A stretch of 31,628 bases of DNA from Chlorokybus atmophyticus (lineage: Eukaryota > Plantae > Mesostigma and Chlorokybus algae). Below are positions 4,099 to 31,628 of the stretch, piece after piece. The notes below the pieces were generated by a model. It saw only the letters and a list, made by a program, of their open reading frames with translations. It had not been told where the DNA came from and ran no database searches. Each line of letters starts with the position of its first letter. The stretch's first letter is position 1. Made by a program: the position numbers and the translations under genes. The stretch covers positions 1 to 31,628 of the forward strand of contig RHPI01001026.1 in assembly GCA_009103225.1 (NCBI GenBank), given 5' to 3'.

Positions 4099-7000
4099 AT
4101 GGCGCCGCCGGCCAGGCCGGGAGCGGTGCGGCTGAGGGTTGCGGACGAGGACGACCAGGAGGACAGCGCTGCAGCAGCGCCGCCGCAGCGCCGGCTTTTG
4201 ACGTCCGCCACCTCTAGGCCTGCTCGAGCCACGGCGCCGCCGCCCACGACAAGCATTGCCCCAGCTGCACGCGGCAGGAGTGCGCCCGCAGTGCGACTGA
4301 CCCTTGACGACTCTGATGAGGAATTGTGGGCAGCTGACCGCAGAGCCAGCGACAGGACCACAGGCCGCACCACCTCCACCTCACGTCTGCCAGCAGCCGC
4401 AGCGCCGGCACCAGCCTCCACCTGGCTTCCACGCAGGTTGGGGCTCGTCTACCGTGTTTCTTGCTGCTGGTCATGTCGTTTGCAGCATTGCGATTGCCAT
4501 TCTCTGGTCTTGCTTGCCTCTTAATTGCTTGTGTACTGGCATGTCATGGGGGAAGCATGTCTTGCAACTTGTAGACAGCTGGCACGTGGCATTTTTGCTC
4601 AATTTGCTTGTCGAAGCGCATTTGTCTCTCGTTATGTGTTTTGCTGAAACGGTGGTTGTCAAAGTCCCTCTATGGTACCTCTTGTCGACTGTTATGCATC
4701 CTGGGTGTTGGCTGCACTCTTGGCCTAATGTTGCCCAGGTTCATGTCTTCAGCTACTGCGAAAGTGACATTAGCTTGTGCCTGACCCTTTCTTGGTTGCA
4801 GCACTTTAGACTGGGATGACGACTACGGCACAGACCGGAAGAAATATGGCCTAGTGAATGAAAAGAAATATGGCAAGTATGACTACCCAGCCGAAGAAGA
4901 TGCCTTCACCGGCAAAGTTTCTGTGCGCGTAAAAGATCTGTATGGTTTTGATCATGACGACCTCTACAGTGATCGTTATGACATGTTTGATCTGGCCGGT
5001 GAGGGCAAGGGCAGCAATTTGGGAGTTGAAGGTGAAGAAGGCGAGCAGGATGAGACTGATGAAGCTGAAGCTGAAGAAGAGGCTGCAAGGGCCAAGAAGT
5101 CACAGAAGCAGGTTAGTTCAGGTCTCAGTTGCAACGCGTCTGAAACCGATGAGAACTTGTTTTTACACAAGGTCATTCTGCTTGACGTACTTTGGTTTGC
5201 ATATTGCAGGAGGTAGTGTGGACAGCAGAGCGCCCATATAGGAGAAATCAGTGGGTCATATGCGCCCTGTCTAGTGGTCTGGTGCTTCTGCTCCTTGGGC
5301 TCTGGGCGTGGCGTTACATTAAATACTGCTTGGATGACGGACGGTGGTTTCGATGCCTACATTTCTTGGCATTCCCTTTCATTGCTTTCTTCATGGCGTT
5401 TGCTTGCAACATCCTCTTCTTGTCGATAATCAACACATTCGGACCTGTTGCACATATTGAAAAGAATTCCAGATATTATTCCTCGATTGCACCCCCACCG
5501 TACTCCGGCCCAGATCCTTTGCCCATGATCACAGTACAGGTATTGAATCGCACTGCGTTGTGGTAGATTGCTATAGTTGCAGCAGAATAGTGCAAATCTA
5601 ATGTGCTGCACTTGTGCAGATGCCTGTCTACAAGGAGGGCTTTAGTGTGGTGCTACAGCCAACACTGGAGTCAGTCATGCAGGCAACAAGACGGTATGGT
5701 GCTAACTGGCTGCTGTATTGTGGGTTGTCATAGACATAAGTGGCTAATAGAATGTGCGATTGCTATGCTTCTGTTCCTGTGATATACTGCAATAGCAATT
5801 GCCTGTCAGGCTTTGCTGGTTTCAACGCTCACTGGCTGCATGTCGCAGATATGAAGAACAGGGTGGGCGTGTCAACATTTTTATCAATGATGATGGCCTG
5901 ATGGTTGTTCCGCGCAAGGAGCGCAACCGCCGGATAGCTTACTATCGCATGCACAATATTGGCTTTGTAGCACGTCCTGCTGAGGGCCGCAAGGGTCGAT
6001 TTAAGAAGGCCTCCAACATGAACTTTTGTCTGCACACTTCACAAAGGGTGAGGCTGCACAGGAGTGATGCTGCCACTGCCTACGCTGTTGCATTGCCGCA
6101 AAGCATTGAGTGTCCTCATTCATGCTGACCTGGTGCTTGTACCAGGTCATGGAACGCACGGAGCAGCTTGGGGGAGTTGCGTACATGGGCCAGGCTCTGC
6201 ACGATGTTCTTGAAGAAAGCAATCACTCTTTCATGATGGGTGGCGATGTTCGTGTAGGAGAGTTCATTCTGCTCATTGACTCAGACACTCGCATTCCGGA
6301 AGACTGTATGCTTCCGTCTGTAACTGAGTTGATGATGTCTCCTGAAGTGGCTTTCACCCAGCATCTGACCTCACCCATGCAGGTTGGTTTAGAGCATGGT
6401 TGCACTTGATGTCAACTTGAGATGAGCTGATCTATATGCTGGGTTGCGTTTTAATTCTGATGGTGGTGGCAGATTGTGGGCGACTACTGGGAAAATGCCA
6501 TCGCGCACTTCACCAACACAATCTACAAGGTGGCGGTTGTCATTGCATGCTCTGGTGGTGATCCGGCACCGCTTGTTGGTCACAATGCATTTCTGCGCTG
6601 GGCAGCTCTGCAGGTAATCCCAACCATCGGAAGTTGCACTGTTTCCAGTCAACAGTAGTGCCTCACGCATAGCAGTCGGGAAATTGTTGACATATGCGTC
6701 AGTATGCTCTTTGCAGCAAAACAGGTGCGTCATTTAATTAGTGATATTTAGTCAATGACGCAACGGAATGATGACTGCAGGAGGTTGGCTGGCAAGAGGA
6801 CGGAGTCACAAAATACTGGTCAGAGTCCCATGTGAGTGAAGACTTCGACATGGCCCTGCGGCTGCAGAGCAATGGTTACATTGGTCGCTACATCACGTTC
6901 ACGGGACCCAACTTCAAAGAGGGACTCAGCCTGACAGTTCATGACGAAATCACCCGATTTCAGAAGTATGCGTTTGGCAGTTCTGAGATGATTTTCAACC

Positions 7001-7915
7001 CAATCAAGCAGTGGCTGTACCGGGGTCCCGTCTCTCCTGTGATCCGGCGCTTCCTGGCTTGCAAGCAGGTGTGCAGCTGTCAAGTGGTGTCGGTTGGCTA
7101 TGCTTTTGCATCGAATTGGCTTGAAATGACAATGAACCCTGACGTGGTCTTGTCAGGTTCCGCTTTTTTACAAATACAATCTGTTTGGCTACCTGGGCAC
7201 ATACTTTGCGATGGCGACTGCTCCGTTCGCTGCTTTGTTCAACTACTTCATGTGGCAATTCTCGTAAGTAGCCATGTGTAACCAAGTGTTGTTACCACTG
7301 CGGCCAGGAAGGTGCTAACATGGAGGTTGGTGTTGCAGGTATAACACGTTGTGGCCTACAGAAGTTATTCACACCATCGATATTGTTTTATTTTCATTAA
7401 TTCTGTTTGGATTCATCTGCCCTCTTACATTGGCGATTTTGAAGTATCGTCTTAGTCACACGTCTCTGCTCCGCGGTGTTTTGACGGAGTTCCAGCACAC
7501 CGTTGCACTGATGGTCTTTTTCACTGGTATTGGTTACCATTTGCAGAACGCTGTCATCGCTCACCTATTCCAGGTACTATCGCATTGCTTTCAGTATGGG
7601 CTGTGTTTGCTTGCTTTTACTAGCGGTCACTTACTGAACTTGTCGCTTTGACAGTCCAAGATGGAGTGGTCGTCAACAGTCAAGGAGTTGAAAAAAAGCA
7701 ACTTCTTCCAGGAAGTGAAGGTGACCGTGGCTGGGTACAAGTGGATGTACATACAGGTTATCTTCTGGCTCATTGTGATTGGCGGCATGTGGAACGTACC
7801 AATTCCGTACCAGATCCGCAGTGTATATGCCATTGCGCCACTCGCTATTCTTCTCATCGGACACGCGTTGCTGCCTGTGGTACTGAATCCAGTGCTCATG
7901 AAGATTAAGTTCTAG
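4099..7915 (+). CDS. Family-2 (GT2) membrane glycosyltransferase, cellulose-synthase-like superfamily; 11 exons, ~839 aa
   Basis: Exons 4099-4436, 4802-5111, 5210-5539, 5620-5693, 5849-6047, 6146-6382, 6473-6613, 6781-7068, 7157-7263, 7339-7573, 7655-7915. All introns are GT-AG and phase-consistent, total 2520 nt. Motifs MPVYKEG, FINDDG, FKKASNMN, LLIDSDTR (DxD), GHNAFLRW, SEDFDMALRLQ and RFQKYAFG. Hydrophobic segments in exons 3 and 9-11. The start codon and exon 1 are the least certain parts. Confidence 0.88.
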
Positions 7916-10377: not shown

Positions 10378-11051
10378 TGTGACGGTGCTCGTGCCTTGTC
10401 ATCTGTGAGTTGGTCCAATCCACAACCTTCTCACCAAGACACGGTATTCACACCGGAACCTTGCCCCCTCTGCCAAGCACACACGCGCGCCCCGCCACTC
10501 GCGTACGCACGCGCATGCGCTCGAAGCTACACACCGACTTGTGTAGCGCCTTGGATGGTCACACAAGCAAGCACACATCAGTGGACACACGCTAGCAACC
10601 CCTGCTAGCCACCACCAAGCGTGCACACAAGAAACTAGGAAGCTAAAGGTTGTATTGCAAATTGTAGAATGTCACTTTTATATCTACCAGTCTGCACATG
10701 CTACTGTCTAGACAATTCTAGCGCTAGACGGAACTAAAAGCTAAAATTATTCTTGCAGAATCTTGTAGTACACTTCTAGACCTTTCCAACGCACCAAAGA
10801 TCTCCTAATTTGCTGCTCATATGGTCAAGTTATACTACTTGGCGCCAGGCCCTTCCAGAAACCTGGTCGAGCCCTTCTCGACTGGCCCTCCGTTTTCTGG
10901 CACCTTCCGGACTGGTCTTGGGACCCCGGTCGATATCCGCGGCAGACTCATAACTCGCCGATATCCGCCACAAGTCATAAAAAACATGTACCTTGCAAAA
11001 TAAGGTCTAAAACGGCCATGAAAGTCACAAAATTTGGCCTTGACTGTTACA
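10378..11051 (-). mobile_element. LTR (674 bp) related to the 802-1443 LTR, with non-matching flanks
   Basis: Minus strand starts TGTAACAG and ends GCACGAGCACCGTCACA (other LTR: GCACGAGCATCGTTACA). It shares the 19-mer GGCAAGGTTCCGGTGTGAA (1355-1373 vs 10447-10465). Flanks are AGCAC and TTCAT. Confidence 0.82.
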
Positions 11052-12050
11052 TTCATGCAATGGATAGCCCTTCCATTTCACTAAGATCTTGCGCACGCCA
11101 TGCACAAACTTCTCACCAAGAATGTCTTCTACCTCCCACTCTGGTTCACCATCCGTGCCAACTTGGGGGCGGCCTTTCCGGCGGTTGTCCTCGATCACAC
11201 GGTTGGCCCGCTCCGTTGGCCCATTAGTTTGCGGGTAGAATGCCGTGCTGAACTTCAGTGTGGTACCCAGTGCACTATGCAGCGCCTCCCAAAACTTACT
11301 TTTAAAGCGCGGGTCGCGATCACTCATAATGCTTCGTGGTAATCTATGAGAACGAAACACATGCTTCACGAACAAGCGTGCGGCCTCCAGTGCCGTGCAA
11401 GATGCGCCACACGGTGCCAAGCGTACCATTTTGCTGGTTTTGACCACGAACACAAGCATAGCGTCGTACCCTTCTTTTGTCTTTGGTAGCCCCGTGATAA
11501 AGTCCATAACTTGCTCCCACTTGAACAATGGCACAGGGAGAGGTTGCAGCAACCCACCTGGCTTTTGGTTGCTTGCCTTCACCCCTTTGACATGCGTCGC
11601 ACAACGCCACGTAGTCGCGCACATTGCGATGCATCTCTCGCCAGTAAAAACGCTGCTTCAAGCTTGCCAAAGTCCTCTCCAACCCTTGGTGACTAGCAAT
11701 GGGCACGTCATGAGCTTCCTTTAGCAACTTCACACGGATATGCGCGACGTTGAGGATGTGCAAGCGCCCGTGGTGCCATAACAGCCTGTCGCGCATTGAC
11801 CAATGCCCACTTGTGTCCGTAGCTGCACTTTCCAGCTCTTGCAACACTTTCATACCCTCCGTGACTTCACGAAGCACTTGCCGAATCTGGTCGGTCCACT
11901 CGGGCTGCACTTGAGCGAGTGCCTCAATTGCATTAAAGCCGGCTCAGCGCGTCAGCAACACCATTTAATATACCGGGCTTGTACTTGATATCAAAGTCAA
12001 AAAGTTAAAAGAACTCCAGCCATTGTGCTTGTCTGCGACTTGGAGAGTCA
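11052..12050 (-). pseudogene. pol: Chromovirus (Ty3/gypsy) pol fragment: RNase H end, integrase and partial chromodomain
   Basis: SRRQAQWLEFF*LFDFDIKYKPG...VADALSR, then the zinc finger AHD...HQG...CDACQR. Integrase core MDFITGLP, SDRDPRF and PQTNGPTERANR, then the chromodomain WEVEDIL...LVKWKGYP. It has frameshifts and an internal deletion near 11186. Confidence 0.93.
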
Positions 12051-26094: not shown

Positions 26095-27316
26095 TCATGG
26101 GTTCCCCGCGCTCCCGCTCTCACCCATATGGCGCGTAGCCGCGGCCTGCCAAAATGTGTGGTGAGACGAGCGGTCAGAGACACATGTGTGGTAAGAGTGT
26201 TGCTGTGTGGTGTAGTGGGCTTCTCTCACAGCAGCAGTCTCATCTGTCCCCTCACACGTCCCACTTACCAGCGCCTGATCTGCGAGTCCTGCCTCCTCGA
26301 TGAATCCCCCGCTCTGCACCGCCTCCGCCGCCGCAAGACGCACCGCAGCATCCTGACATAGTAAACCAATCTTGCTGTTGTTGTGTGTTCTGGTCACTAG
26401 AATGAGATCAGGGACAGTGCATGCAGCTCAGTGTCTTTGTTACCGTTTTCATGGGCACCCCGCTGTGGTACTCCGGCGGACCCACCGCATCCTCCACAGG
26501 GTACCTGTACACACACACGCGCACGTGTTGGCACAGATAAAGCTGTGTGCACCGAGTTGCTGTGTGCGTCATGAAGATGATCACTCGCTGAGGGTTGCAG
26601 GCGGGGAACTCGCCTCGCGCATGTCGGTCGGCCACAGACTGTTCACATGAGTAAGAACAGAGGGAAAATTTCAGATATACACACAACAACAACAACAACA
26701 GCAAGAACGACAAGTGTGTTATTGAGGCGCATGCAAAGAAGTGATTGAACTCTTGTGCACAAGTGCGTCCAAGTACGCTCGAACAACTCATGAATATGTA
26801 CACGTGCAGGTGCAGCAGCCTGCCAGTATGCACTGTACCGCCAGACACAGTTGCGTTTGAGAGTATTATTGTCATCACATTCACACAATTACATTCCCAC
26901 CCACCCACCTGCGCCTTTACCGCGAATCCCCCCTTCAATTTTCCCGCCCGTCTGATGCGCCTCAGCAGACTCGATCCAGGCAGCACCCGACTGCAAAACA
27001 GAGTGCGCATGTGCGTACACATGCATGAGTGTTAAGCACAGACATGCATGTGTGCAATGAGCATCCCGTGTGCGTGAGTGTACGTTTGGAGTCAGTCCAT
27101 TCAAGCATGCAGTGTGTGCTTGCACGCGCGCGCGCAAGGGACGGCATCATGCTAGCTGGTGGCATGCCAAACATCAGAAGCTACAGTTACTGAGAGTAGT
27201 AAGGCTTGCATACTTTGTACCATACCCCCCCAAAAACTCACCTTGGTCATGGGCACTCCGATAGGCAGGTACTGCGGCGGGCGCAGGTCGAGATTGACGT
27301 TGACATTGGAAGACAT
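26095..27316 (-). CDS. Two-repeat SMP (seed maturation protein / LEA-type)-like gene, copy A; 6 exons, apparent frameshift in exon 2
   Basis: Exons 27316-27242, 26990-26909, 26638 to ~26589, 26504-26444, 26352-26269 and 26145-26095. Repaired protein (~134 aa): ...PPQYLPIGVPMTKSGAAWIESAEAHQTGGKIE[K]GGFAVKAQSVADRH...PPEYHSGVPMKTDAAVRLAAAEAVQSGGFIEEAGLADQALAAATRH.... This resembles the SMP pattern PMT..AA.IQSAEA..GG...G.FA..AQSAA as I recall it. Intron 3 needs a GC donor or in-frame retention. Confidence 0.62.
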
Positions 27317-28210
27317 CTTGGCTGCTTGTGTACTCGCGCTCTCGCTCTCACCTTGAACCTCCACGAGATAACAACAACAACAACAGCGAACAGGAAAAAA
27401 ACACAGGAGGACAAGAAGAAAGAAGCCTCCTTGTTTGGTTTGGCTAGCCCATCCCCGGTGAAAGGGATGTGACAAGGCGTCAGTGATCTACGAGACTGAG
27501 TGCTGGGCTGAGCTGCTATACAGGTCCCGATGCTTCTATCAACGACATGCACAGTATTGCTGAGGTCAGCACACGCGCATATGGGACGTCAGCAGTGCAA
27601 AAGGAGACATGATGATGCAAACACAACCCGTAGACGTACACAAACCCTGTACATTTACACAGTTGCCACAAGTCACCAACGTGCATGCACTTGCTGGGAA
27701 ACGGAGATGCAGGCAGTCACCTGTTGCGCATGCATGCAAGAAGACGACGGGTATTCATCTACAATCAGTGCGCTTGGCAGAAGTAAACCTCCCAAAACAA
27801 CCTTCCCTCGAGGCAAGCAAGCATTGACGTGCCTTTTCACGCATCCATGTGACTGTGTGTGATTTGTGTGCATCGTGCACACTAGCTACATACCCGCTGC
27901 ACGTGCCAGATGCTTCGTGCTGCCGCAGTCACAAGCAAAAGTGGATTGGTTGGACACGCACAGAGTATGGAGTAATGCTTGAACAGAAGAGTCATAGAAC
28001 TATTCTTTGTTGTGCAGAGCTCGAGCTAGTGCCATGCCACTCACAATTAGTGGACTCATTCCTCTAGAGGCTGAGCCATTATCACTATACCACTTGTCCC
28101 TCTCAAAGTCCACAAGAGGACAAGACAACTGCACATGACATGTTTGTGTACCGGCACCCAGCACACGGCAGCCCCATTGTGCTGGGAATGCTTCCTTCAG
28201 CAATTCTCTC

Positions 28211-28669
28211 TCACACCACATCCTTGCACCAGACGAACCCAATGGCCACGGTGATAGGCGCGGACCACAGGTTGTCGTTGACCCAGGTGCATCCGGCAAT
28301 GCCGCCATACAGGATGGTTTCGAGCAGAGCAACGCCCGGTGGGTTCTCGGAAGCTTTGCGGCATATGACCTGCACGGCCTTTCCAGAGCTCTGATCGTTA
28401 GGCTGGACATTGAAGATGTTGGCTGTGTTTCCGTTGAAGCTGTATTCACTCTGGAAGTAGTAGCTGGAACATCCATCTGCCGCCAGTGACCGAGGCACTG
28501 GAATACACTCTGGGGAGCCGTCTGAGGTGCATGGAGAGGCGGGGATATTGTAGTAATAGGTGTTCGTCAACATGTTCACTGGCCTGCAGGTTCTCGTGGT
28601 GGTGGCATGAACACCCGCAAGTCCTGTTGTCACCATGATGACTGCTGCCAGGAGCAGCGCCGTCTTCAT
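28211..28669 (-). CDS. Small secreted cysteine-rich protein, copy A (152 aa, unknown family)
   Basis: Intact single coding exon: MKTALLLAAVIMVTTGLAGVHA (signal-peptide-like) plus a 130-aa mature region with 7 Cys. A probable 5'-UTR intron ends just upstream (TTGATGCAG), with a TATA box further upstream. A paralog lies in arm B. Confidence 0.85.
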   Translation of the reverse strand: MKTALLLAAVIMVTTGLAGVHATTTRTCRPVNMLTNTYYYNIPASPCTSDGSPECIPVPRSLAADGCSSYYFQSEYSFNGNTANIFNVQPNDQSSGKAVQVICRKASENPPGVALLETILYGGIAGCTWVNDNLWSAPITVAIGFVWCKDVV

Positions 28670-28956
28670 CGCCATCTGCATCAAGAGTAGATATCCACAC
28701 GTGAGCAAGTCGGTTTTCCCCGTGCAAACCGAAGGCCAAGCAGCTGACAGTACGCGTCTTGACATTGATAACTCATCAATGTCAAGACGCGTACTGTCAA
28801 GACGCATGCCAGCATGTGATCTACCACAATGACAGTGTGCAAGGCGAGCTTTACCGGTGCTAGAGGGAGCCTGGTGAGTGGCGGGCGCAGACCACAAGGT
28901 TGTCAACGGCAGTGTCTTGAGGCTCGAAGTATGCGTTGCTAGGAGACCTTCCCCTG

Positions 28957-28963
28957 TTTTATA
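28957..28963 (-). promoter_or_regulatory. Candidate TATA box of secreted-protein gene A
   Basis: GAG-TATAAAA-CAGGGG on the minus strand. The homologous site in arm B (29769-29775) reads TACAAAA. Confidence 0.5.
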
Positions 28964-30032
28964 CTCGACTGAGACTGAGGTCTTTCTTGGCCGGTTGCCG
29001 CGGCCTGACGACGCAGCACAGAGGGCATGGCGCAGATAAGCGGCGCCTTGCTCAGCTCTGTGCAAGATAGCCCGCCTGCCAAGTGTGGATGGCGCGCGCA
29101 GTGCCGCGGCCCGAAAGTTGTGGCTATTGCGGCATGACATGATGCTGCCGCCGGCATCTTACTCAGCTCGTAACCAGGTAGTTGCGCTGTCAGCAGGGAA
29201 ATATAATAGTATATTAGTACGTACATCCTATAGGCTGTGTATCACAGCCCGATAAGATAAGGCGTCGAGTTCGTCCACACAAAGCGACTCCGCGACGCAT
29301 CAATACGGTCGCCTTGCTTTTACCGCGCCAAACACGGTGTAGGGTATAGGCTACCACCACGTGCTGCCAAAAGATCCGCGTCAGCACCAGTCACGCCTAG
29401 CCGCACTATCAAGACTCAGTACCGCTCTCGTCGCATGCAACCAGTTGACAGCACAACACGTCACGTCAACTTCAACTCCTCCGAGAGCGTCTGAGCAGAA
29501 CAACACAACACACAGCAGTTAGGATAAGGTACTACTACATTTTCCCTGCTGACAGCAGCTTACTCACCTGGCGGCCGGCGGGCTTGCCTTGGGCTGAGGA
29601 AGATGACGCAGCAGCCGCAATAGGCCTCGTGCCGCGTCACAGCGCGCGCCATCCACTCCTTGCAGGCGGGCCATCATGCCCAGAGCTGAGCAAGGCGCCG
29701 CCATGCCCTCAGTGCTGCCGCGGCAGCCGTCGAGACGGACAGACGAAAAGGCCTCAGTCTCAGTCGCGTACAAAAAGGGGAAGGTTTCCTGGCAATGCAC
29801 ACAGCGAGCTTCAAGACACTGCCGTTGACAACCTGGTGATCTGCGTCCTCTACGCATCAGACTCCCTCTAGCACCTGTAAGTCTTGCCTTGCACACTGCC
29901 ACTGTGATGGATGACATACGTTCTGGCATACGTTTTGTAAGTATGTGGACATCAGCAACTGCTTGGCCTTCGGTTTGCATAGAGAAAACCGACTTGCTCA
30001 CTTGTGGATTTCTGCTCTTGATGCAGAACGCG

Positions 30033-30487
30033 ATGAAGACGGCGCTGCTTCTGGCAGCAGTCATCATGCTGACAACAGGACTTGCGGGTGTTCATGCTAC
30101 CACCACGAAAACCTGCAGGCCAGTGAACATGTTGAAGAACGTCTATTCCAGGGTCCGCGCCTCTTCATGCTCAGCAAGCACCACCGGACCGTGTATTGCA
30201 CTGCCTCCGTCACTGGTGGCAGATGGATGTTCCAGCTACTACTTCGAGGCTGCCTATAGCTTCAGCGGAAGCACAGCTAACGTCATTGAGGTCCAGCCTG
30301 ACGACCAGAGCTCCGGAAGGTCCGTGCAGGTCCTATGCCGCAAAAATAACGTGGCACCACCGGGCGTTGCTCTGCTTAAGCTACGATCTATGAAGGCACT
30401 GCCATATGCACCTGGTCCAACGACAACCTGTGGTCCGCGCCTCTCACCGTGGGCGTTGCGTTCGTCTGGTGCCCCACTGCGGTGTGA
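30033..30487 (+). pseudogene. Small secreted cysteine-rich protein, copy B, with a 1-nt deletion (pseudogene or sequencing error)
   Basis: Starts MKTALLLAAVIMLTTGLAGVHA. The frame is lost at CTT-AA-GCT (30378-30379). Restoring one base gives ...VALLxATIYEGTAICTWSNDNLWSAPLTVGVAFVWCPTAV*, collinear with copy A and with all 7 Cys kept. Confidence 0.85.
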
Positions 30488-31341
30488 GAGCTTTGCTGAA
30501 GCATCCCCAGCACAATGGCTGCCGTGTGCTGGAAGGTACACAAACGTGTCGCAGCTGTCTTGACCTTGTGGACTTTAGAGCGACAAGTAGTAGGTAGTAA
30601 CAAAAAGGGCTCAGACTCTTCCGTTAAGCATTGTACTCCAAACTCTGTGTGTCCAACCAATCCACTTCTGCTTGTGACTGCGACAGCACGAAGCATCTGG
30701 CATGTGCAGCGGGTATGTAGTTTGTGTGCACGATGCACACATCACACACAGTCGCATGGATGCGTGAAAAGGCACATCAATGCCTCGAGGGAAGGTTGTT
30801 TTGGGAGGTTGATTTCAGCGCACTGATTGTAGATAAGTACCCGCCGTCTCCTTGCATGCATGCGCAGGAGGAGGTAACAGTTGCCTGCATCTCCGTTTCC
30901 CAGCAAGTGCATGCACGTTGATGACTTGTGGCAACTGTGTAAGTGTACGGGGTTTGTGCACGTCTACGGGTTGTGTGTGCATCACAACGTCTCCTGTTGC
31001 ACTGCTGACGTCCCTATATGCGCGTGTGCTGACCTCAGCAGTACTGTGCATGTCGTTGACAGAAGCATCGTGATCGGCACCTGTTTGGGGTGTAGCAGCT
31101 CAGCCCAGCACTCAGTCTCGTACATCACTGACGCTTTGTTACATCCCTTTCATCGCACCATTGCAACCCAGCCCAGCCCAGCCCAGCATAGCATAGCGTC
31201 CCCATAAGCGAAGAAATGAGTGAGTGAGTGAGTGAGTGAGCAAGTGAGCTCAAGTACCTTCTGCACACCAGGGGTGGGCTAGCCAAACCAAAACAAGGAG
31301 GCTTCTTTCTTCTTGTCCTCCTATATTTTTCTTTTGTTCGC

Positions 31342-31342
<1 letters not shown>

Positions 31343-31384
<42 letters not shown>
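31343..31384 (+). repeat. (GTT)14 microsatellite upstream of SMP-like gene B
   Basis: 14 perfect GTT units. The homologous site in arm A (27370-27384) has only 5. Confidence 0.95.
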
Positions 31385-31434
31385 GCTTTGAGGTTCAAGG
31401 TGAGAGCGAGAGCGCGAGTACACAAGCAGCCAAG

Positions 31435-31515
31435 ATGTCTTCCAAGGTCAATGTCAATCCCGACCTGCGTCCGCCGGAGTACCTGCCTACCGGAGTGCCC
31501 AATGGCATGACCAAG
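31435..31515 (+). CDS. SMP-like gene copy B, exon 1 (rest lies outside the window)
   Basis: MSSKVNVNPDLRPPEYLPTGVPNGMTK|GTGCGT, homologous to exon 1 of copy A (MSSNVNVNLDLRPPQYLPIGVPMTK|GTGAG) with the same donor position. Confidence 0.7.
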
Positions 31516-31628
31516 GTGCGTTTTCCGGGCGGTACCATGATGGTACCGAGTATGCGAGCCTTTCTACTCTTAGTACTTGCAGCTTCTAACGTTTGGCATG
31601 CCACCAGCTAGCACGATGCTGTCCCTTG

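Follow-up and report, generated by a model that had tools for sequence, protein, structure and literature searches.

Close to a telomere in the 31,628-nucleotide stretch of Chlorokybus DNA that was analysed (the window), an inverted duplication was found that carries two copies of a small gene, designated A and B. In the reading that we favour, and that we hold to be somewhat probable, these genes belong to a secreted protein family confined to Chlorokybus, whose mature domain has been diversifying on a stable scaffold after the inverted duplication. The codon comparison of A and B supports, with moderate confidence, positive (diversifying) selection of modest strength on the mature domain. 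Both genes were located where a preliminary description of this DNA had placed two secreted paralogs (28211-30487). The features are as follows.

1-116, no strand: telomere repeat (CCCTAA)n at the very start of the window
27135-29110, minus strand: arm A (inverted repeat pairs I1-I14 and MAFFT alignment of the arms)
28211-28669, minus strand: gene A, an intact single-exon ORF of 152 codons plus stop (ORF and translation)
28490-28564, minus strand: hottest variable patch of A, codons 36-60 (sliding windows)
28604-28669, minus strand: putative signal peptide of A, residues 1-22 (read from the sequence)
29111-29639, no strand: central spacer of ~530 bp between the diverging genes, without alignment between the arms
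29640-31628, plus strand: arm B (inverted repeat pairs and MAFFT), extending past the window end
30033-30098, plus strand: putative signal peptide of gene B; the mature part starts after 30098
30033-30380, plus strand: first of two pieces of gene B, which keeps to the family frame for 116 codons (67.5% identical to A by tblastn)
30381-30382, plus strand: frame break of gene B, net loss of 1 nt (codon alignment with A)
30383-30487, plus strand: second piece of gene B, back in the family frame for 34 codons and the stop (alignment with A)

Gene A lies on the minus strand, its start codon beginning at 28669 and its stop occupying 28211-28213. Its product, 22 residues of signal peptide followed by a mature part of 130 residues that contains seven Cys, aligned end to end with the independently annotated Chlorokybus protein Chlat1 7453, with three one-residue gaps only. 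The signal peptide of A has one Lys and then a hydrophobic core, and its last residues, V-H-A, are small and precede a Thr run; residues 1-22 of A and B are a putative secretion signal, and secretion of both products is presumed on this basis. The hottest patch of A includes a one-codon indel and two fixed Cys. Upstream of the start of gene A, two more in-frame ATGs are present at distances of 2 and 4 codons, only the farther of which (4 codons) is found in gene B.

Gene B (30033-30487, plus strand) is a head-to-head copy of A with the frame broken at 30381/30382. Neither piece has an in-frame stop; in the second, the C-terminal core motif is conserved, the last two Cys are retained, and the family-frame stop lies at 30485-30487. 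As it stands, gene B runs out of frame past residue 117 to a stop at 30561-30563, giving a product without the last two of the seven Cys. An ordinary long-read homopolymer sequencing error is unlikely, since there is no homopolymer at 30381/30382. Copy B, its frame since lost, is probably a young pseudogene; the preliminary description mentioned the broken codon yet gave it no weight. In gene A, the -1 frame stays free of stops over 158 codons (28000-28476, minus strand), and gene B past the break (30383-30563) now reads in the frame equivalent to it, so that a gene caller could call B 'intact', with 176 residues and a foreign tail.

The last 4.5 kb of the window consist of the inverted, head-to-head duplication with one small gene copy per arm, arm A being made up of ~440 bp upstream, the gene and ~1.1 kb downstream. 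The spacer (29111-29639) showed 46-55% identity in a forced alignment of the arms. In the flanks, 179 of 1365 aligned bases differed between the arms (13.1% divergence; 87% identity), with a range of 78% to 94% identity per 100 bases and 25 indel events in the MAFFT alignment; the upstream flank alone was 18% diverged (82% identity). The earlier figure of ~95% flank identity had to be replaced by this overall value of 87%. Conservation of the ~80 bases before the start codons (28670-28746, minus strand; 29956-30032, plus strand) was 92-93% between the arms, similar to that of the signal peptide, as against 82% for the whole upstream flank. These bases may be a 5' leader or a local conversion tract. 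Trinucleotide microsatellites of the GTT/AAC type, unequal in length between the arms, were present at 27370-27440 and 31290-31370 and appear in ORF translations as poly-Val or poly-Asn. An Rfam scan of 26500-31628 gave no match.

The repeat (CCCTAA)n at the window start agrees with the motif that PMC8287931 gives for the telomeres of Chlorokybus atmophyticus and places the gene pair ~28 kb from the chromosome end; it passes directly into unique sequence. The secreted gene pair sits amid retrotransposon remains. Overlapping ORF pieces with an integrase zinc-binding domain, an integrase core and a chromodomain at 11025-11910 (minus strand) are, by these domains, assigned to a degraded Ty3/chromovirus-type retrotransposon. 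Nearer to the telomere, an exon-like ORF at 6832-7281 (plus strand) matched Glyco_trans_2_3 (E 4.8e-13) and probably belongs to a glycosyltransferase gene with several exons. Both arms keep a small ORF downstream of the secreted gene (27152-27316, minus strand, 54 codons; 31435-31611, plus strand, 58 codons), with start and stop common to both copies and two indels of exactly 6 nt each between them. With an NG86 omega of 0.98 and a dS of 0.137, it may represent another fast-evolving gene or merely open non-coding DNA.

Codon alignment of A with B, with X set at the break, yielded 128 comparable mature codons, comprising 73 identical, 6 silent-only and 49 replaced codons; over the whole gene, the silent-only codons numbered 8. 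The mature parts are identical at 79 of the 128 aligned residues (62%), the alignment being interrupted by a single codon indel and a single broken codon, in agreement with the earlier reading by hand (79 residues, ~61%, and the same two interruptions). The count of 49 replacements versus 5 silent changes given there stood for the replacements and was corrected to 6 for the silent-only codons; it overstates the case because replacement sites are ~3 times more numerous than silent sites. The mature part contains 79 base differences, distributed 31/31/17 over codon positions 1/2/3.

With NG86 counts, 67 of 291.5 replacement sites and 12 of 92.5 silent sites were changed in the mature part (pN 0.230; pS 0.130), pS being equal to the flank divergence of 0.131. 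Corrected values were 0.27-0.28 for dN and 0.13-0.14 for dS, with an omega of 1.93 (NG86), 1.97 (LWL85), 2.08 (YN00) and 2.0 (ML). The dN/dS ratio, expected beforehand to be well above 1, was indeed above 1 with all four estimators (1.9-2.1), with marginal statistical strength and for one pair only. dS corresponded to the local neutral divergence, that is, silent sites were not depressed and no old tracts appeared to have been imported. The signal peptides differ, as previously described, at 1 of 22 residues; their 22 codons contain this one replacement and two silent changes, corresponding to a dN of 0.02, a dS of 0.10-0.12 and an omega of ~0.2 (0.19-0.23).

Sliding windows over A codons 36-60 gave pN values of 0.38-0.48 versus pS values of 0.08-0.19, and the hottest patch, codons 41-60, a pN of 0.46-0.48 versus a pS of 0.08. 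Silent differences are spread unevenly along the gene, pS being 0.19 in all variable patches pooled versus 0.11 elsewhere (5 and 7 silent events, respectively). Across alignment choices, omega ranged from 1.8 to 2.9; it was 1.8-1.9 after realignment at the frame break and 2.5-2.9 with the codons within 3 of either indel removed.

In the GY94 pairwise likelihood-ratio test against omega = 1, which rests on one sequence pair, a 2dlnL of 4.28 (p = 0.039) was obtained for the mature part and p = 0.032 for the whole gene. Fisher's test of replacement versus silent sites, based on the NG86 counts, gave p = 0.025. Replacement sites also exceeded all flanking DNA (p = 2.7e-5); when only the upstream flank (18% diverged) served as reference, the difference was not significant (p = 0.06). 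dN was thus significantly greater than dS, at marginal strength and in a single pair of DNA sequences, the third copy (Chlat1 7453) being known as protein only.

As an internal control, the non-coding DNA of the arms was read as pseudo-codons in six frames and evaluated by NG86. The resulting omega was 0.46-0.96, a neutral baseline below 1 because transitions dominate. Among 1198 non-coding 128-codon blocks, which overlap one another, 7 (0.6%) matched or exceeded the observed pN/pS of 1.77. Transitions and transversions were in a ratio of 35:43 in the coding region versus 110:69 in the flanks (p = 0.02), revealing an excess of transversions in the gene. The coding region contains 2 indel events versus 8.3 expected from the flanks (p = 0.011), which implies that both frames were protected during most of the time since duplication. 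Positive selection, as proposed in the preliminary description, was partly upheld, its strength being modest: omega is ~2 (p 0.006-0.04, depending on the test), dN exceeds both dS and the flanks, and silent divergence in the hottest patch does not increase along with replacement divergence. The word 'extreme', which had been applied to the diversification, was too strong for an omega of ~2 in one pair with a broken B and flanks 13% diverged.

A word-indexed search of 5.8 billion clustered proteins returned Chlat1 7453 (Chrsp6S07462) of Chlorokybus as the sole relative. It has 187 residues as modelled, the 35-residue N-terminal extension of the model probably being spurious. In the mature part, identity was 70% between Chlat1 7453 and A, 66% between Chlat1 7453 and B, and 62% between A and B. 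Chlat1 7453 would be a paralog of A and B if all three belong to one genome, or possibly an ortholog if the strains differ. Exact-product look-ups for Chlat1 7453 and A returned no DNA of Chlat1 7453 or of other relatives, and no relative was found in a metagenome scan with the mature part of Chlat1 7453.

Comparison of the three copies revealed the scaffold. In the signal peptide, 19 of 20 aligned positions were invariant versus 70 of 128 in the mature part (p = 4e-4). The seven Cys, at A positions 28, 47, 55, 67, 103, 127 and 148, were invariant in A, B and Chlat1 7453 and probably form disulfide bonds, an odd number that leaves one of them without a partner; the earlier statement that the seven Cys and the cores ADGCSSYYF and NDNLWSAP are fixed was borne out in the A/B alignment. 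With Chlat1 7453 as the reference, 14 private residues were counted in intact A and 20 in broken B (p = 0.39), and 15 more sites differed in all three copies. As A is nearly as changed as B, the excess of replacements is not simply decay of B. The small number of coding indels, the lack of in-frame stops in both pieces of B, the fixed Cys and the fixed core motifs likewise argue that both copies were functional over a long time.

Relaxed constraint combined with chance would explain these data by near-neutral drift of one or both copies made redundant by the duplication, with B as a pseudogene and an omega of ~2 as a fluctuation around 1. We regard this as rather doubtful. It would fit the frame break of B, by which part of the B branch may be neutral, the likelihood-ratio p of merely 0.04, the p of 0.06 against the upstream flank alone, and the omega of 0.98 of the small downstream ORF in the same arms. 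However, an omega >1 is out of reach for neutral drift, and the neutral baseline from the same arms and with the same estimator is ~0.75, with the observed value matched by only the 0.6% of blocks given above. Invariance across the three copies extends to more than half of the mature positions, to the seven Cys and to the signal peptide, so that the remaining sites must exceed the mean omega of 2 by far. Likewise, the deficit of coding indels indicates that the frame was long kept, and intact A is nearly as changed as B.

A mosaic origin, in which gene conversion introduced patches from distant family members and the divergence is older than the duplication, was judged very unlikely. The mature domain of Chlat1 7453 is indeed closer to A and to B than these are to each other, the first five informative sites all place Chlat1 7453 with B, and the uneven distribution of silent differences would agree with imported tracts. 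Old tracts should, however, show matching silent divergence, a scenario that had been named beforehand as one that would contradict selection; with a pS of 0.08 versus a pN of 0.47, the hottest patch does not fit it, and the pooled patches have a pS of 0.19 versus 0.11 in the remainder, based on the 5 and 7 events stated above. Neither the runs test of A-like versus B-like sites (p = 0.10) nor the leading run (p = 0.19) was significant. An artefact, be it misalignment at indels, a false inverted copy created by assembly, or an overlapping frame restraining silent sites, is highly improbable and largely excluded. Although both hottest patches coincide with both indels, omega did not fall but reached the 2.5-2.9 given above once the codons next to the indels were omitted; arms differing by 13% and 25 indels are incompatible with a fold-back assembly error; and although the -1 frame of A is open at 28000-28476, the equality of pS and flank divergence shows that silent sites are not restrained, and other frames of the coding region gave values of 0.6-1.3.

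Neither Pfam nor NCBIfam assigned A, B or Chlat1 7453 to a family, the sole Pfam row being DUF6520 (E 0.2), and the literature on Chlorokybus secreted Cys-rich proteins contained no description of the A/B family. An exhaustive HMMER profile search (1.84 billion representatives) revealed Chlat1 7453 and five large bacterial-type repeat proteins; the latter match A residues 53-97 via a short FG-GAP-like motif. These matches were multi-repeat bacterial proteins with E 8.5e-9 to 2.5e-4, in addition to one GHL6-type and one DUF4347 hit. Judged by these searches, the A/B gene family appears to be restricted to Chlorokybus so far.

Two AlphaFold models, obtained with effectively no alignment depth, had pLDDT values of 67.6 and 70.5 and pTM values of 0.61 and 0.65. 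Both contain one short helix and seven beta-strands, and the predicted fold is, with moderate confidence, a beta-sandwich of uncertain kind. Foldseek against the PDB gave no match at E 0.001 or better and a PDB profile search by sequence nothing below E 0.1; in the ESM Atlas, no match was above 0.81 by features and TM was at most 0.52 by shape. A wide fold search (VIA) with the two models gave a best Z of 6.0-6.3, where typical chance maxima of the tool are 7-8, so that the earlier remark that the fold is not a recognised one still holds. The next-best fold matches were a pyocin fibre foot, the PCSK9 C-terminal domain and H-type lectins (Z 5-6, in the noise range). Many of these look-alikes of the models are binding modules, yet they are no evidence of function. 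In the predicted model, no enrichment of the variable sites in loops was detected.

For the favoured reading, diversification on a stable scaffold, the following course of events is proposed. The family would consist of a small secreted protein, rich in beta-strands and probably held by disulfides. A block of at least 2 kb containing the gene was duplicated in inverted, head-to-head orientation ~28 kb from the telomere. Since the duplication, silent and non-coding sites have diverged by ~13% and the mature replacement sites by ~23%, with up to 47% in one patch, while the signal peptide, all seven Cys and the beta-strand core have stayed fixed. The likeliest cause would be diversifying selection on exposed parts of a stable scaffold whose extracellular binding partner varies, and our preferred guess for the ligand would be a microbial molecule or a glycan in the soil biofilm inhabited by Chlorokybus. 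Copy B has since lost its frame.

Since Chlorokybus lives freely in soil and is not known to have a sexual cycle, we favour an extracellular binder facing microbes, on the defence or recognition side; our confidence in this role is low. The pattern of a conserved leader and signal, fixed Cys and patchy fast replacement resembles the familiar signature of secreted, surface-selected proteins, and the label of effector, recognition protein or surface antigen, when applied to A and B, is a guess. Going further, A and B might encode an extracellular recognition or defence molecule of an early-branching streptophyte alga, either binding like a lectin or inhibiting some microbial enzyme, with a Cys-stapled beta-sandwich not seen before; it would be engaged in an arms race with soil microbes, and the subtelomeric region would serve as a 'nursery' in which copies arise and disappear. 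We consider this unlikely as a whole.

An orphan pair with an omega of ~2 is, taken alone, not rare in eukaryotic genomes. Fast diversification of secreted proteins usually marks, at the molecular level, conflict or recognition among organisms, and such interactions are little known in the algae nearest the root of the land-plant lineage. The locus offers a testable candidate, with one intact gene, one decaying twin and one further copy elsewhere, and shows that in Chlorokybus, as in fungi and parasites, secreted genes are born and die near telomeres.

Among known structures, PliG (4dzg, 4dxz) was the best match of both models (Z 6.3/6.0, rmsd 2.7-2.9 Å, 84-85 residues). The PliG proteins are bacterial, periplasmic inhibitors of g-type lysozyme and share a similar size and an all-beta sandwich with the A model. 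Identity with PliG was rejected, the Z being under the noise level of 7-8 and sequence identity 9-10%, with no sequence or profile match. H-type lectins and the receptor-binding feet of phages and pyocins are small sugar-binding beta-sandwiches; SLL-2 (3wmp), HPA (2ccv), discoidin (2w94) and the R1 pyocin fibre (6cxb) gave Z 4.3-6.1 over 77-91 residues, the three lectins being at Z 4.3-5.4, in the noise range.

In a comparison with FG-GAP_2 (PF14312), A residues 62-93 covered most of a single blade, with 42% identity in 31 columns, and hhalign of A with the seven repeats of the large repeat protein P0003 gave 48% probability over 31 columns. The low E-values of the repeat proteins arise because seven weak repeat matches are summed. 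Membership in FG-GAP_2 was rejected, as Pfam gave no match to A even at E 10; unlike the beta-propeller of this family, the similarity in A is confined to one partial blade and the A model is a sandwich. The FG-GAP-like motif is a lead only.

A conserved signal combined with a hypervariable mature part is known from the conotoxins of cone snails, amphibian skin peptides, and vertebrate and plant defensin-like genes. As in these families, the A/B signal peptide (95% identical) and 5' leader (93%) are conserved, the mature part outpaces the silent sites, the Cys framework is fixed and the duplication is local. Unlike them, A is larger (130 residues) and predicted to be an 8-strand beta-sandwich instead of a knotted mini-peptide, and A and B have an odd number of Cys (seven), no pro-peptide and three known copies; there is no sequence relation between these families and A/B.

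Effector or avirulence genes of fungi and oomycetes encode small, secreted, Cys-rich proteins and lie in subtelomeric or repeat-rich regions. A and B resemble them as orphan, small, putatively secreted and Cys-rich proteins with an omega >1, encoded near a telomere amid retrotransposon remains, with one copy decaying. Their carrier, unlike those of the effectors, is a free-living photosynthetic streptophyte alga and no pathogen, and the comparison does not imply a host target. Were the change driven by biotic interaction, the A/B protein would more likely be on the defence or recognition side. We conclude that A and B are a new orphan among the rapidly diversifying, small, secreted, Cys-rich proteins encoded near chromosome ends.
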